Sequence record: NC_042098.1
Length of the DNA stretch: 64,000 nucleotides
Reading direction: 5' to 3' (one strand)
The position numbers and the translations under genes were made by a program. Below, one piece after another: positions 5,419-62,249 of this stretch. The notes below the pieces were generated by a model. It saw only the letters and a list, made by a program, of their open reading frames with translations. It had not been told where the DNA came from and made no database searches. Position 1 is the stretch's first letter, and every line of letters begins with the position of its first letter.

Positions 5419-5446
5419 GGAGAGCTTCGGCTCTCCTTTATGCCGG
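5419..5446 (+). terminator. Hairpin + TTTATGCCGG element
   Basis: GGAGAGC-TTCG-GCTCTCC followed by TTTATGCCGG, directly after a stop codon. Confidence 0.8.
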
Positions 5447-56444: not shown

Positions 56445-57596
56445 ATGCGTCAGTATTTGGATGGGATTCGTTACATCTTTGAGAACGGGTCACAACGAGG
56501 GGATCGCACCGGGGTAGGTACGTTGTCGGTGTTCTCGATGAAGCAGACTTACGATCTGCGTCTGGGATTCCCACTGGTCACCAGTAAGAAAGTGCGTATC
56601 GATTTTATTATCGAAGAGCTCATCTCCTTCCTGTCGGGTAATCCCGATATGCCGGGTGTGGGTATCTGGGATGATTGGCGTGTTAAAGACGAAGTCTCTC
56701 GTGAAGTCCCGTTAGAGAACCACGAGCGTTTAAAACTCTGGGTTGAGAAGTCGGACCTGAAGTATAACGTTGCTTACCTTCAACTCAATGCGATGGGTTC
56801 TGTCGAAGCGGGTCATCGTTTCCTGGATGAGCAAGGGATTCCACGTAACAGAAAAGAAGTACTGGTAGCAGAAGGTGCACTCAATGCACCCTATGGGCCA
56901 GCGTGGCGTGCGTGGAAAGGTCGTCAGGGCGAAGTGCATGATCAGATCGGTTATCTGCTCAAGCTGCTTAAAAACAATCCTACGAGCCGTCGTATGCTAT
57001 TGTCTGCTTGGGACCCGGCGAACATGCCGGATGAGTCTATCAGCCCGCAGGATAACATCATTGATGGCAAGCCACCTCTGACTCCGTGTCATTGGGCGTT
57101 TGAGCTGTACACTGACGAAATCCTGGCAGAGGAACGCCTTGATTGGGTCGAAGCTAACGCACCTAGCCTCTGGGAAGACTACAATGATCGTTCAGGACGT
57201 GGTCAATGGTTAGGCGACACAGACAGTAAGCGCCTTCATGAATTCCTGGACGAAGCCGGCGTACCGAAGTATTACCTGGATATGAAGTATCACCAACGTT
57301 CCTGTGACTATATGGTTGGCGTGCCGTATAACATCGCCAGCTATGCGGTGTTGCAGCACATGTTCGCCGCCACCTGTAACATGATCCCGCGGATACTGGA
57401 AGCGGATATGACTAACATCCATATCTACAACTTCCACAAAACCAATGCGGTCATGCAGGCCAGTCGCAGCCCACGCGCACTACCCACTCTGAAGGTACTC
57501 GCCGCTCACGATAAGTTGGAAGACTATACGTTGGAAGACTTTGAACTCGAAGGTTATGATCCGCATCCTTTTATTAAATATGAAAGAGCGGTCTGA
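56445..57596 (+). CDS. thyA: Thymidylate synthase with two large insertions
   Basis: DRTGVGT, FPLVTSKK, YGPAWR, SRRMLLSAW, PCH (catalytic Cys), QRSCD and PYNIASY motifs. Confidence 0.95.
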   Translation: MRQYLDGIRYIFENGSQRGDRTGVGTLSVFSMKQTYDLRLGFPLVTSKKVRIDFIIEELISFLSGNPDMPGVGIWDDWRVKDEVSREVPLENHERLKLWVEKSDLKYNVAYLQLNAMGSVEAGHRFLDEQGIPRNRKEVLVAEGALNAPYGPAWRAWKGRQGEVHDQIGYLLKLLKNNPTSRRMLLSAWDPANMPDESISPQDNIIDGKPPLTPCHWAFELYTDEILAEERLDWVEANAPSLWEDYNDRSGRGQWLGDTDSKRLHEFLDEAGVPKYYLDMKYHQRSCDYMVGVPYNIASYAVLQHMFAATCNMIPRILEADMTNIHIYNFHKTNAVMQASRSPRALPTLKVLAAHDKLEDYTLEDFELEGYDPHPFIKYERAV

Positions 57597-57994: not shown

Positions 57995-58000
57995 CGCATA

Positions 58001-58028
58001 CGGAGGGGTCATTCCCTCCGCTATGCCG
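58001..58028 (+). terminator. Hairpin + CTATGCCG element
   Basis: CGGAGGG-GTCATT-CCCTCCG-CTATGCCG. Confidence 0.8.
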
Positions 58029-58063
58029 ATTAAGTTTTTAACAAAGTTTACTGCAGATCTTTT

Positions 58064-58077
58064 CAGACCTATATCAC
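58064..58077 (+). promoter_or_regulatory. Putative early promoter core CAGACCTATATCAC
   Basis: One mismatch to the phiKZ TATATTAC core; shares CAGACCTA with 40024. Confidence 0.55.
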
Positions 58078-58126
58078 GTCGGTGAATAACCTTTCACTAA
58101 TTAACCAATCCGTAAGGAGTTTTATC

Positions 58127-59503
58127 ATGGCTGCATTAAAATCTAAAGTTGAACTGTTTCACTGGTATCAGGAACTGAAAACTGAATTTAAAACCGGCAA
58201 GATTACCGTGTTCGAATTTGAGCGGCAAGTGCTCAGCGAAATTCTTTCCCTGACCGATACTGGTAAAACACCATCTACTGCCAAAATCAGTCTGGTAGTG
58301 GACATCCTTAATTCTGTGGTTTTTGATCATGTGTTTACCGCAGACGGTATCATTGACCTGGACAACATGCTCGCTCGTGAACACGTACGCAACATTTCGG
58401 AATTGACGGCAGCACGCAATAACTTTATTACCATACAAGCCCAGGCCCGTCTGAACAAAGAAAAGGAACAGACTGCGAAACCAGCAGAGCAGAAGGCGTT
58501 TGCCAAGTTTCCAACGAAAGAAGAGCTCGAATATTGGGTTAATGCCAGAAAGCTATTCCGTTATGGTAACCCCAATACGCTCGGCACTGAAGCATACCAG
58601 GAGGTTGTCAAATACTGGCATCTGGTCGATAAATATCTGGGTACATTAAAACTGGAACTGGATCACACCGACCCTAACTACGTCGATAACATCCTGTTGA
58701 TTGACTACTTTGTATCGTTGGTCGCCAAGCAAGAGGTTCCTGAGGAAGAACGCAGGCATCTGAAAGACACACTTAGCAGTCTATATGCGTGCCCCATTAA
58801 AACCCCACACATCGATGCATTTGTCGAACGTGACCAACACCCCCTTCCAGTTAAGCCAAAACAACCACCCATCGCGCAACAAGCCATCGACCGCGCTATT
58901 GCCTGGCGTGAAGAGGAAACCAAAACAAACCATCAGCAAAAAGACATATTACGAGAATTCGCCGATCAATACTGTCCGGTAATGGTGGCCAAGCAACATG
59001 CCACTCAGCAGTTGTTTGATTTCGTTGCTCGTGCGGTGAAACGTGTCTTGACCGCCATTGCTCAGCCAAACAACCCGGAAGACGCCGAGATGCTGGCAAA
59101 AGGTCATGCCATCAACATTCTCAATGTTAAGCATGGTGTAATTGGTGTCAGTACCACGATTACCAGAAACGGTCTGGTCAAGTTACGCATCTTCGCTGAA
59201 CGTGAACTATGTAACGAGGACTACGGTATTCCGACTCTGTCGTATAATCAAGTCCGTCAATCACCTCATGCAACGTTCAGCATACCAATGCCGGCACTGA
59301 TAGATGGGTTCATTAACATGTGGGATATCCCTAATCAGGCCCCTCGCCATATGCATAATAGCGTAGGCGGTATGTTGGGTAATCCCTATCCGTTACAGCA
59401 GCTTGATGGTTTGATGTCAGCTATTGCAAGAGAAACAGCCGAGTACGGCGTTACGCCTACTTATGGCATGATCGAAGACAGCATGATTGTTGTGCTGCAT
59501 TAA
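58127..59503 (+). CDS. Hypothetical protein sharing an N-terminal module with 59567 (start revised to MAALKS)
   Basis: AAGGAG RBS; about 458 aa. Confidence 0.8.
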   Translation: MAALKSKVELFHWYQELKTEFKTGKITVFEFERQVLSEILSLTDTGKTPSTAKISLVVDILNSVVFDHVFTADGIIDLDNMLAREHVRNISELTAARNNFITIQAQARLNKEKEQTAKPAEQKAFAKFPTKEELEYWVNARKLFRYGNPNTLGTEAYQEVVKYWHLVDKYLGTLKLELDHTDPNYVDNILLIDYFVSLVAKQEVPEEERRHLKDTLSSLYACPIKTPHIDAFVERDQHPLPVKPKQPPIAQQAIDRAIAWREEETKTNHQQKDILREFADQYCPVMVAKQHATQQLFDFVARAVKRVLTAIAQPNNPEDAEMLAKGHAINILNVKHGVIGVSTTITRNGLVKLRIFAERELCNEDYGIPTLSYNQVRQSPHATFSIPMPALIDGFINMWDIPNQAPRHMHNSVGGMLGNPYPLQQLDGLMSAIARETAEYGVTPTYGMIEDSMIVVLH

Positions 59504-59510
59504 TTCACAC

Positions 59511-59540
59511 GGGGAGGTTTCCCTCCCCCTTTTATTTTTT
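59511..59540 (+). terminator. Intrinsic terminator
   Basis: GGGGAGG-TTTC-CCTCCCC followed by a long T tract. Confidence 0.85.
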
Positions 59541-59566
59541 AATTAACCTACTGTGAGAATTTAACC

Positions 59567-60268
59567 ATGAACAAAGAAACTTATACTACCTGGTACAATG
59601 GATTAAAAGAAAGATTGGCGACTGGGCACATTAATCAGGAACACTACGAGACACTTATTGTTGACAATCTAAGTTCATTGATTACTCATTTCTTCAATAG
59701 TCGATACGACGATGGTCATATGTCTCTGGAGGAGCATTTTGCGTTAGTTAATCATTATTTCGAACTGGTTGCTGATGCAGAAATATCAGAACGCAGTGCC
59801 ATGCTCATGGTACGTTCTGTAGCTAGCAGTATTCAAAAGCTACCAGCGGCTAAAGCCTTCGCAGAGAAACATAACACTCCGGCGCCGTCAATTAAAGAAA
59901 TTCTTGGTAGTCGACCTGGTTTACTGCGTAAGCATGCTGCCAGCACGACCGAGAAGATGATAGGGTGTCCGGTGATCACCCAGGCCAACGAACCTGAGAA
60001 CGAAGTAACCATTGACTTACCCTGGAAATTGGCATTGCACGTTTACAAAGGGTTCCTGGTAAAGGCGCTGATGTCAAAGCACGGATATAAATACAGTGAT
60101 GCGTATAACTACATTACTGATCATCAGAACAAATACGACGAACTCTTGGCAGAAGTCCTCAACAACATTATTGCTAATGAGGAATCGCATCTGGTGTCGG
60201 TAGGTGGCGGCATCACTGCAGCGGGTACTGGTCTGGTGGTAAGCGGGATTATTAAGCCGGAGGAGTGA
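59567..60268 (+). CDS. Protein carrying a degenerate RNA polymerase beta-prime switch-2/dock-like segment
   Basis: aa 108-202 align by eye with the RpoC G.R...G..VIT...LP..AL..FK.F...L...G pattern; no NADFDGD. Confidence 0.6.
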   Translation: MNKETYTTWYNGLKERLATGHINQEHYETLIVDNLSSLITHFFNSRYDDGHMSLEEHFALVNHYFELVADAEISERSAMLMVRSVASSIQKLPAAKAFAEKHNTPAPSIKEILGSRPGLLRKHAASTTEKMIGCPVITQANEPENEVTIDLPWKLALHVYKGFLVKALMSKHGYKYSDAYNYITDHQNKYDELLAEVLNNIIANEESHLVSVGGGITAAGTGLVVSGIIKPEE

Positions 60269-60828
60269 TGAAAGGAGAGATAGAGACACGCTTCAGAAGA
60301 CACTACGGCAACCACATTAAACGGGGTAGTGATATCGCAGTGCCTTTATACCACATTAGTCTACAGAATGACTTGGAGGGGCTATGGCGACCTAAAGCCC
60401 CTGACTCGCCATTTGATATTCCGAAGAAACCCAACATCATTACTGAAATGCCGCTCCCGCGTATCTGTGTAGCACCATCTATCGAACAGTGCTTCTGGGC
60501 AATCTATCCCAATATCTCTAAGCTCTTTGAAGAGGAAGAATACGCAGCGGTTTGTTTTGCGGTTTATCAACCGATTCTGCATGCCGGTATTGCTGTCGTG
60601 GATACCAGTACGTTAACGCAATGCCGACTAGTGCACGATGCACATATTACCGGCGAGCATTGGTTACTTAGTGATACCACCATGTGTGTGATCGACTTTA
60701 TTCAGGTTAATAACACCTCACACGGCGAGTTCGTAAAGTTCCATCCGTTTAATACCCCGGTTGGTAACGAATGGGAGCTCGCCCCTAAAAATGTTGTTTA
60801 TCATTCACTTAAATTAACGGAGTTGTAA
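60265..60828 (+). CDS. Hypothetical protein, possible ADP-ribosyltransferase-like fold
   Basis: LYHIS and PRICVAPSIEQC motifs. Confidence 0.6.
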   Translation: MMKGEIETRFRRHYGNHIKRGSDIAVPLYHISLQNDLEGLWRPKAPDSPFDIPKKPNIITEMPLPRICVAPSIEQCFWAIYPNISKLFEEEEYAAVCFAVYQPILHAGIAVVDTSTLTQCRLVHDAHITGEHWLLSDTTMCVIDFIQVNNTSHGEFVKFHPFNTPVGNEWELAPKNVVYHSLKLTEL

Positions 60829-60832
60829 ATCC

Positions 60833-61477
60833 ATGGTAACTGCTAGAAAAGCTAATAAGACCTTAGGTGAGCACGCAGTGGCTCATGAGGCAGTAACACG
60901 CTTAGGTAGCAACAAGAAAGTCAAACCAGTTAAACCGCTTTGGACACTGGAGAACATCGAGGACAATCTGGTTGGTCAAGGCATCCTTGCCTACTTGAAA
61001 CGCCACACGTCGTTATCGATCCGTGATATCAACACCGCGGCTAACCGCCTGACGAAGATTGCTGATTCAGATATAAAGGAAGGGAAAGCGCGTGATTACG
61101 TGGCACGAGTTATTGGGTACAACAATTACGACGCTCTCAACGTCACCGTTCGTGCAGCGGTACCTGTGCGCAATCATGTACAACGTCGTAAAGCAAATCA
61201 GCCGGTCACAGAGTTGTTGATAGAAGACGAAGAACTGCCGCCGGTAACACGTACTGAAATCAACCCCTTGGTGATGTTAGCCCTACAGCGTGAGATCTCT
61301 AAACGCGGCTTTCGTCTACTGGGTAAGAACTACCGGGCTTTCGTTAACAAGGATAACCCCGAGCACACCTTTACGTTGATGCAGGCGTATAACTACCTTG
61401 CCAAACAACTGGGTTATCCGGATTATCACTCTATGCCCCGTCAATACCCAATCATTAACTTGCGCTACGTCGATTAA
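60833..61477 (+). CDS. Basic protein with two internal A...GY..Y helical repeats
   Basis: ARDYVARVIGYNNYDAL and AYNYLAKQLGYPDYHSM. Confidence 0.7.
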   Translation: MVTARKANKTLGEHAVAHEAVTRLGSNKKVKPVKPLWTLENIEDNLVGQGILAYLKRHTSLSIRDINTAANRLTKIADSDIKEGKARDYVARVIGYNNYDALNVTVRAAVPVRNHVQRRKANQPVTELLIEDEELPPVTRTEINPLVMLALQREISKRGFRLLGKNYRAFVNKDNPEHTFTLMQAYNYLAKQLGYPDYHSMPRQYPIINLRYVD

Positions 61478-61499
61478 CCTATTGTAAGGAATAAAGAAC

Positions 61500-62249
61500 A
61501 TGACAACGACTTTCCCGAAAGAGATGAATGCTGCTTTCCATCCTGATAACGAACAAACCACCCAGCTGTGCAAAACGATCCAGCAGATCAGCGGGGTGGA
61601 GATCAAACGTGTACATGTGGTGATGGCGATCCACCATTACAAACAAAACGATGCGGCACATCAGCCTGACCACATGCTGGCGGTCTTAGCAGAAGCAGCC
61701 CACATCATCCAGTCGTTTCCTGACCTGGAGAAATGGCGCACCCAGATCATGTTAGGGTGTCTGTTCCATGACACCCACTGTCACATCGATCGGGATATGC
61801 ACCACCTGCTAGGCGCCGAACATGCCCAAGAGGCATTACTGGAGTATGCGTGTGGTTATGGGATGTCACGTGCGGATGTCTACCTGATCAGTCAGGCCGT
61901 GCTGGAGCATCGGGCTTCCTGGAAGTACCCGCGTATTAACCCTGTATCCAACGCTGTGGCGTCTGCAGATCGTGGCTACCCTGATCTAAAGAAATACATC
62001 CGTCGTGCTGTACAGTACCGTTACAAGCGCACGGCAGTCATCAACATGAACACCATCATCGATGAGTCGATCGAGCACATGGTAGAGAAGTTCGGGGATG
62101 GCGGTTATGCCTGGGAGAGCTACCCGACATATGCGGCAGTGATGCACGGTGATGCGATCCAACAAGTGAAGCAACAACTGCGCAGTAAAGAAGGAAAGGC
62201 GCAACTCAAAGAGTACGCTGAACTCCACTTTGATGAGTGGGTAGAGTAA
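61500..62249 (+). CDS. HD-domain phosphohydrolase
   Basis: H..DH, LFHD, HH..GA, AVLEH and SAD motifs in canonical order. Confidence 0.85.
   Translation: MTTTFPKEMNAAFHPDNEQTTQLCKTIQQISGVEIKRVHVVMAIHHYKQNDAAHQPDHMLAVLAEAAHIIQSFPDLEKWRTQIMLGCLFHDTHCHIDRDMHHLLGAEHAQEALLEYACGYGMSRADVYLISQAVLEHRASWKYPRINPVSNAVASADRGYPDLKKYIRRAVQYRYKRTAVINMNTIIDESIEHMVEKFGDGGYAWESYPTYAAVMHGDAIQQVKQQLRSKEGKAQLKEYAELHFDEWVE

Follow-up and report, generated by a model that had tools for sequence, protein, structure and literature searches.

The gp70 gene and its product

We analysed a stretch of 64,000 nucleotides (the window) that is equal to bases 1-64000 of the fetched record of Erwinia phage vB_EamM_Desertfox (MG655268.1, 272,458 bp), a nucleus-forming jumbo phage of the genus Agricanvirus; a megablast search with positions 58000-62000 gave 100% identity to Desertfox at matching coordinates. 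The subject of this work is gp70 (DESERTFOX_70), a plus-strand coding sequence at 59567-60268 that specifies 233 residues plus a stop and is annotated as a hypothetical protein. An earlier note on this DNA, made without database searches, had described the open reading frame (ORF) accurately and had quoted its peptide without error. It took the segment at 59888-60172 (residues 108-202) to be a degenerate switch-2 and dock segment of an RNA polymerase (RNAP) beta-prime subunit.

The protein begins with a lineage-specific helical domain (N-domain; residues 1-105, plus strand, 59567-59881). This is followed by a module (residues 111-206, plus strand, 59897-60184) that is homologous to the N-terminal beta-prime subunit (beta-prime-N) of jumbo-phage non-virion RNA polymerases (nvRNAPs) and that comprises a switch-2-like helix, a beta hairpin, and four dock-like helices. 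The protein ends in a glycine-rich tail, SHLVSVGGGITAAGTGLVVSGIIKPEE (residues 207-233, plus strand, 60185-60265), which is near-invariant in the family. The comparisons described below establish gp70, at the level of sequence, as a non-catalytic, truncated paralog of beta-prime-N that carries a foreign N-domain and an invariant tail and is maintained under selection.

The homology as such was already known. The gp070 protein of phage RAY is identical in sequence to Desertfox gp70, and this close relative has been characterised as a chimallivirus that forms a nucleus and possesses two multisubunit RNA polymerases (PMC10299810). In the legend to their Fig. 2, Prichard et al. 2023 name the RAY genes gp223 and gp070 as two homologs of Goslar gp188 and phiKZ gp055; the authors tagged RAY gp223, and no localisation was reported for gp070 (PMC10299810). 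In GenBank, the homolog from phage AH06 is labelled 'DNA-directed RNA polymerase subunit beta-prime', whereas most other records read 'hypothetical'. We found no analysis in the literature of the truncation of gp70, its missing motifs, its tail, or its mosaicism, and a comparative review of jumbo-phage polymerases makes no mention of a third, partial copy.

Homology to the N-terminal beta-prime subunit of jumbo-phage polymerases

In a single-sequence phmmer search of PDB, residues 111-204 of gp70 matched phiKZ gp55 (7ogp_A, chain residues 292-385) with E=1.6e-5. Profiles came from a 12-sequence alignment of the gp70 family (A1) and a 60-sequence alignment of beta-prime-N proteins (A2). Against PDB, the A1 profile reached E=6e-10 for 7ogp_A and E=8e-5 for the AR9 nvRNAP beta-prime N-terminal subunit (7S00/7S01 chain d), the latter over residues 53-209, although hhalign did not confirm the extension of this match into residues 53-110. 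A cyanobacterial gamma subunit and a bacterial beta-prime (E=0.53) were also aligned in the same register, at non-significant E-values. Comparison of gp70 with A2 by hhalign gave a probability of 99.5% and E=2.6e-23, and paired residues 111-206 with residues 290-386 of gp223, the phiKZ gp55 ortholog of Desertfox itself. In the reverse search, the beta-prime-N hidden Markov model (HMM) scored all members of the gp70 family at 74-92 bits, and it matched gp70 solely over columns 254-366 of 474. Among PHROGs, gp70 matched phrog_11276 over its full length (residues 1-233 of 233, E=8.3e-160) and phrog_2987, 'RNA polymerase beta subunit', only over profile positions 226-368 of 478 (E=4e-17). A search of 1.84 billion cluster representatives with the A1 profile returned 228 proteins at E<=1e-3. 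The 150 matches listed are, with few exceptions, of beta-prime-N size (mostly 370-550 residues, with some shorter partials) and are aligned at about residues 265-365. These profile comparisons confirmed the homology of the gp70 module to beta-prime-N.

The module corresponds to about residues 272-366 of phiKZ gp55, residues 290-386 of gp223, and residues 328-419 of E. coli RpoC, a stretch made up of switch 2, a hairpin, and the dock helices. The assignment to RpoC made in the earlier note holds in several respects. The RpoC sequence given there agrees with the fetched E. coli rpoC, the alignment over the first 31 residues is free of gaps, and the beta-prime-N HMM columns matched by gp70 (270-366) align to RpoC 328-419 with 83 bits. 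The phiKZ gp55 clamp spans residues 1-291 (PMC7618050), and the stretch corresponding to the module lies just after it. The barrel with DFDGD (417-421) lies beyond this stretch (PMC8287921).

In one respect the proposal had to be amended. A stand-alone, non-catalytic homolog of the switch-2 and dock region is indeed present; however, its donor lineage is the jumbo-phage non-virion beta-prime-N of the phiKZ gp55 type and not the host RpoC. The gp70-family profile scored only 0.9 bits directly against E. coli RpoC, compared with 42 bits for phiKZ gp55, and a Pfam scan of gp70 returned no RNA_pol_Rpb1 match even at E<=10. On these grounds the relationship of gp70 is with the phage beta-prime-N lineage; its link to bacterial RpoC, with which it shares a register through phage intermediates, is transitive only.

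The predicted structure agrees with this assignment. AlphaFold2 (AF2) predicts the order helix, hairpin, four helices for the module, which is also the order in phiKZ gp55. For residues 100-233 modelled with both family and beta-prime-N sequences in the alignment, the predicted local distance difference test score (pLDDT) was 87-96 across residues 150-199. All of the top 50 Foldseek matches of this model in PDB were RNAP beta-prime chains (50/50). The best were AR9 7s00_d (E=0.014) and phiKZ 7ogr_A (68 columns at a root-mean-square deviation of 1.8 A), and beta-prime of Thermus, E. coli, and mycobacteria was matched over 53-56 columns at 1.5-2.8 A. With the full-length AF2 model, Foldseek searches of PDB and BFVD were not significant; the ortholog from phage Ea35-70 was recovered, as were, weakly, the phiKZ and AR9 beta-prime subunits. 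Because the E-values are weak (0.014 or worse) and the segment model was built with beta-prime-N sequences, the structural matches are consistent with the homology and not a separate proof of it.

A third, partial copy that lacks the catalytic parts

We fetched the whole Desertfox genome and searched all of its ORFs for polymerase pieces. The product of gp223 (185295-186782) is a complete ortholog of phiKZ gp55 (E=1.9e-54 over gp55 2-417), with a GLLRK...VIT segment and RNPTL of its own, and it matches the Pfam family Rpb1_2 with 28.7 bits, above the cut-off of 25.3. The virion-polymerase counterpart, gp164, likewise has its own switch 2 (GKRGILQQKWGRRRIFNGTRNVIT) and DYDGD. A DxDGD motif is present in both gp223 and gp164. 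Since beta-prime-N is complete in both the non-virion (gp223) and the virion (gp164) polymerase, gp70 is a third, partial copy. The nearest genuine polymerase gene is gp2 (plus strand, 1001-2689), which encodes an nvRNAP beta-like subunit orthologous to phiKZ gp123 (phmmer against PDB 7ogp_E, E=3.2e-44 over residues 2-532). With gp2 at 57 kb and gp223 at 125 kb from it, gp70 lies in an accessory region, as had been proposed.

The invariant or near-invariant positions of A2 include the zinc cysteines C72, C74, C87, and C90, as well as R396, N397, P398, N433, D435, D437, and G438. In the A1 and hhalign comparisons none of the residues of the zinc site, RNPSL, or DFDGD has a counterpart in gp70, which has a single cysteine (C134) and an N-domain that does not align to the clamp. 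Without these elements gp70 cannot be catalytic. The last residue of the protein falls at the first strand of the barrel or slightly within it, before the catalytic motif NADFDGD, in keeping with the earlier description. In one homolog (P0007; contig L012, 5001-5813) a 37-residue extension past the tail contains PDFDGAA, which recalls NADFDGD. We considered this as a vestigial DFDG, but the beta-prime-N HMM does not align the extension and we treat it as an anecdote.

Relative to phiKZ gp55 and its orthologs (phrog_2987; PDB 7OGP/8QUE chain A; gp223; Goslar gp188), then, residues 111-206 of gp70 are homologous and collinear, and the signature G..R, VIT, LPW, L is retained. In contrast, gp70 has 233 residues rather than about 500; it has no zinc cysteines, clamp, RNPSL, or DFDGD; it carries an unrelated N-domain and an invariant glycine-rich tail; and two switch-2 arginine positions have been lost or relaxed. 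The AR9 protein, whose chain is the best Foldseek match of the segment model, also differs from gp70 in being a full catalytic subunit.

The N-domain and the tail

The N-domain is predicted by AF2 to be entirely helical (pLDDT about 76-94). The earlier claim of an unrelated N-terminal module is borne out by the profiles. The first 110 or so residues have no profile-level similarity to beta-prime-N by hhalign, greedy mode included, and the aligned span is residues 111-206 only. The possibility that the N-domain is a diverged clamp was raised by some HMM matches and by the match to phrog_2987, which reach residue 54; it is not supported, as hhalign, even in greedy mode, gains no score from the extension. 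The domain instead shares a motif in its first 40 or so residues, K..x.WY.xLK.xL..G.I....FE, with gp69, the product of the adjacent gene. An hhalign comparison of the two families pairs residues 3-40 of gp70 with residues 22-59 of gp69 (E=4.8e-5), and a joint HMM of the motif matches just gp69 and gp70 in the genome. We also considered gp69 as a second polymerase-derived protein and rejected this, its hhalign probability against beta-prime-N being 0.3%.

In the tail, 23 of the 27 columns are invariant among the 12 sequences and the other four are at least 90% conserved, in a family that is 55% identical overall. The AF2 model of the tail is of low confidence (pLDDT <50) and depicts a coil or a weak hairpin. 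Its hydrophobicity is moderate: the 19-residue Kyte-Doolittle maximum is 1.48 at residues 211-229, which is below the usual membrane threshold of 1.6 and borderline for a membrane anchor. It aligns with the variable loop and first strand that precede RNPSL in beta-prime-N, or, in an alternative register, with the first barrel hairpin. It is either left over from the loop and first strand that lead into the catalytic barrel, or it is a new effector or anchor peptide. Pfam and NCBIfam scans found no family or motif in the tail, and a blastp-short search of all Desertfox ORFs found no mimic of it.

One candidate for an independent occurrence of the tail was examined and discarded. A 191-residue protein (P0012) shares the last 48 residues of gp70; however, it is a spliced gene model laid over decayed Agricanvirus-like fragments. 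Its locus (L008, 1300-15500; GCA_054859325.1, JBTAPL010000082.1) lies on a 4.7-Mb contig that is apparently eukaryotic and rich in retroelements. Here scrambled and decayed fragments resembling gp2, gp4, the gp70 C-terminus, gp72, gp73, and others are found amid reverse-transcriptase and integrase genes. These fragments are either transferred phage DNA or an assembly chimera.

Selection on gp70

Nei-Gojobori estimates on five gp70 coding sequences reveal purifying selection over the whole of gp70; the tail and the dock-like helices are the parts most tightly held by it, and the switch-2-like part is the least so. In the tail the proportion of nonsynonymous differences (pN) is 0.02-0.06, the proportion of synonymous differences (pS) is 0.5-0.7, and the ratio of nonsynonymous to synonymous substitution rates (dN/dS) is 0.01-0.08. 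The constraint on the tail is on the protein level, as its codons differ freely at synonymous sites. The dock-like helices have a pN of about 0.2, with pS saturated and dN/dS therefore not computable. In the N-domain pN is 0.22-0.39 and pS is 0.67-0.92 and mostly saturated, with dN/dS about 0.15 where computable. The switch-2-like part has a pN of 0.26-0.41, a pS of 0.44-0.77, and a dN/dS of 0.2-0.5.

Six of the nine near-invariant positions of the beta-prime-N module are invariant in the gp70 family (G118, R121, V136, P152, W153, and L168). Among the other three, R309 is lost, R315 varies between R, C, and Q, and K297 corresponds to R116 in Desertfox and is variable in the family. The substitution of basic residues in switch 2, which the earlier note had pointed out, is supported. 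The position of E. coli R346 is occupied by T128, and that of R352 by C134 in Desertfox and by R, C, or Q across the family. The selection profile, together with the positions kept and lost, suggests that a role in contacting nucleic acid was lost and that a folded dock-like surface, probably protein-binding, was retained.

Distribution and origin

The gp70 family comprises 11 homolog clusters at 55-98% identity, all Agricanvirus-like, together with one 50%-identity cluster representative and three IMG/VR loci. By these sequences the family is confined to Agricanvirus-like phages, a single genus-level clade, whereas gp55 orthologs are not so restricted.

Within this clade the gene carries a mosaic patch. 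At 59611-59970 on the plus strand, which is about codons 16-135 of gp70, Desertfox and Ea35-70 have only 53-69% nucleotide identity, with no indels. The windows adjoining the patch are 93-97% identical, and the wider flanks are almost all 96-100% identical. By tblastn, gp70 has 72.5% amino acid identity between genomes that are otherwise about 98% identical. Judged by these identities, the patch is a clean recombinational replacement between near-identical phages.

The A1 profile gives 19.6 bits to gp223 of the same genome and 38-57 bits to the listed representatives outside the family, which belong to other lineages; all 228 matches outscore gp223. In a FastTree phylogeny of the segment of about 100 residues, the gp70 clade branches from within the other phage beta-prime-N proteins and not beside gp223, although resolution is poor. 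By the better scores to other lineages and the segment tree, gp70 is not a recent internal copy of gp223. It is either an old duplicate or an acquisition from another jumbo-phage lineage.

Gene neighbourhood

The gene order thymidylate synthase, small ORF, gp69, gp70, gp71, gp72, phosphohydrolase is kept among the relatives, with small insertions in some genomes. The constant upstream neighbour, gp69 (plus strand, 58127-59503), shares its N-terminal motif with gp70, and it also precedes gp70 in AH06 and in two metagenomic contigs. The annotated GTG start of gp69 at 58082 is probably wrong, since in an alignment of five homologs all begin at the methionine encoded at 58127 (MAALKSK...). Downstream, the start of gp71 (plus strand, 60268-60828) overlaps the gp70 stop codon (ATGA), which makes translational coupling of the two genes likely; the same overlap is found in AH06, Ea35-70, and L012. 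No Pfam, NCBIfam, or PDB match was obtained for gp71. Pfam and NCBIfam scans of gp70 and of gp69-gp72 yielded nothing meaningful, and gp73 had no Pfam hit. Weak matches to L22, YciE, and NagK were rejected as short and below the cut-offs. In AH06 (L009, 3028-5022) the thymidylate synthase gene upstream of gp69-gp70 is split by an insertion with an HNH homing endonuclease; the gene is intact in Desertfox (56445-57596).

Between gp69 and gp70 lies a strong terminator-like hairpin with a T-run (plus strand, 59511-59538; GGGGAGG-TTTC-CCTCCCC), which has seven base pairs, six of them G-C. After the hairpin, at 59545 on the plus strand and 22 nucleotides 5' of the gp70 ATG, is the motif TAATTAACCTAC, which recurs upstream of other genes. 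The general form of this motif, (A)ACCTA[CT]ATTAC, is found mostly 30-70 nucleotides before gene starts. A second motif, TTAACC, directly precedes many ATGs in Desertfox. Sites of the two motifs are at 59545 (before gp70) and 61476 (before gp73) in the window and at 79081, 90066, 158728, 174606, 222285, and others in the genome, and both are enriched 6-20 fold in k-mer counts. On this evidence (A)ACCTA[CT]ATTAC may be a promoter class and TTAACC an unusual translation-start context. The k-mer enrichment gave recurrent motifs, from which no expression class could be assigned to gp70.

Genome-wide, about 45 GC-rich hairpins in Desertfox are directly followed by (T)TTATGCCG and not by a plain T-run; examples in the window are at 5438, 35261, 40419, 47077, 49539, 53056, 53631, 62280, and 63505. 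The hairpin before gp70 (59511-59528) does not have this sequence. The combination of hairpin and (T)TTATGCCG looks like a phage-specific terminator or a combined terminator and TATG-type promoter signature.

Possible functions of gp70

Our tentative proposal, to which we give somewhat less than an even chance, is that gp70 works as a non-catalytic pseudo-subunit whose dock-like surface lets it act on the polymerase of the phage itself. Of beta-prime-N, gp70 retains just the module that lies between clamp and catalytic barrel. In this proposal switch 2 would have given up its contacts with DNA, and the dock-like surface would have been retained for protein binding. The protein might then bind the usual partner of this part of beta-prime-N, candidates being a beta or beta-prime-C piece, a gp68-like initiation subunit, or an assembly or import intermediate. 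Such a pseudo-subunit could modulate how the phage polymerase assembles, enters the nucleus, or initiates, with the N-domain and tail supplying an effector or localisation function. Because the similarity to RpoC is negligible, a phage RNAP is a likelier target than the host RNAP.

In phiKZ, import of the nvRNAP subunits takes place after they have come together, fully or in part, and relies on the contacts among them (bioRxiv 10.64898/2026.09.21.753271); moreover, the phiKZ initiation subunit gp68 contacts gp55 (PMC8287921). By analogy, both observations would fit a pseudo-subunit. The conserved synteny and the probable coupling to gp71 were also counted in its favour.

Several points weigh against this proposal. 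The most constrained element of gp70 is the tail, for which no polymerase role is known, so that the main activity of the protein might lie outside transcription. The family is limited to one genus-level clade, and chimalliviruses in general can do without it. The module is no autonomous domain within an intact polymerase, AF2 confidence is low for the switch-2-like part, and the structural matches have the weak E-values and the dependence on the beta-prime-N alignment noted above. Finally, gp70 was not among the proteins found by mass spectrometry of RAY and Deimos-Minion lysates, although that survey is shallow.

A less probable explanation, but one to be taken seriously, is that the beta-prime helices are a structural remnant serving as an exapted scaffold, and that the activity resides in the tail, the gp69-like N-domain, or both, and is unrelated to the polymerase. 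Membrane or vesicle anchoring, oligomerisation, and host-factor binding are examples of such activities. The strong constraint on the tail and its moderate hydrophobicity speak for this explanation, as do the sharing of the N-domain with a non-polymerase neighbour, the place of the gene in an accessory region, and its mosaic patch, which is typical of host-interaction genes. However, the hydropathy of the tail stays under the membrane threshold, AF2 predicts no helix there, and the tail has no family, motif, or in-genome mimic in the searches described above. The dock-like helices, moreover, keep the beta-prime-N signature as family invariants (LPW..AL, L168) under clear purifying selection.

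Returning to a polymerase-directed role, a more specific form of the pseudo-subunit proposal is that gp70 is a dominant-negative or regulatory mimic of the dock, with the tail as effector, that binds either the phage's own nvRNAP, in timing or import, or that of a competitor, in exclusion. We regard this as doubtful.

The competitor version, taken by itself, is quite unlikely. It holds that gp70 is an inter-phage weapon, a dominant-negative beta-prime-N mimic that poisons nvRNAP assembly in competing jumbo phages, while the phage's own gp223, having diverged at this interface, is immune. The higher A1 scores to other lineages than to gp223, the nesting of gp70 among those lineages in the segment tree, and the ongoing exchange suggested by the mosaic patch all agree with it, as does the PW motif, whose near-invariant W is kept in gp70 and is absent from gp223 (LPRC). 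The argument is nevertheless purely inferential. The tree was built from about 100 residues and gives topology only, the divergence of gp223 may have other causes, and the switch-2-like part, which faithful mimicry would need, is the least constrained region of the protein.

A role directed at the host is very unlikely. Here gp70 would be an RpoC mimic that titrates host sigma, NusA, or RpoB and so shuts off host transcription. In bacterial beta-prime, the RNA exit channel and the route followed by the sigma 3.2-4 linker both adjoin the dock and switch-2 region. RAY leaves the host chromosome undegraded (PMC10299810), so that control of host transcription would be useful. Against such a decoy stand the profile scores for RpoC and phiKZ gp55 given above, the fact that all significant relatives are phage beta-prime-N proteins, and the absence of the clamp helices, to which sigma region 2 and NusG bind.

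Least probable is that gp70 is an essential trans piece of a further-split beta-prime or a decaying pseudogene remnant. In its favour, the polymerase genes of jumbo phages frequently come in pieces or with interruptions (phiKZ gp55 has an intron with an HNH gene), and only seven polymerase genes are annotated in Desertfox. However, the region duplicated in gp70 is present in both gp223 and gp164, so that nothing is missing, and a decaying remnant is excluded by purifying selection across the ORF at 55% identity and by the invariant tail.

Implications for jumbo-phage transcription

Nucleus-forming jumbo phages transcribe entirely with their own split polymerases, and the assembly, nuclear import, and gene-class switching of these enzymes are little understood. 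As a conserved and selected, non-catalytic copy of one part of the catalytic subunit that is rich in interfaces, gp70 suggests itself as a candidate regulator of the phage polymerase or competitor with it. A conceptual parallel exists in archaea, where the inhibitor TFS4, derived from TFS, is a non-catalytic paralog of a transcription-machinery protein that has become a regulator. There, catalytic residues were lost, a binding surface was kept, and a modulator resulted; however, the two proteins are not homologous, and for gp70 such a role is a proposal.

Whatever its function, the annotation of gp70 needs correction, as the protein is a truncated paralog and not a polymerase subunit in the catalytic sense. 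Being small and expressible, gp70 also provides a means of probing the surface that surrounds the RNA exit channel. Should its activity lie in the invariant tail, the tail would mark a new short functional peptide. If it is instead a dock-mimicking pseudo-subunit, it would be the first phage-encoded regulator made from a piece of a polymerase.

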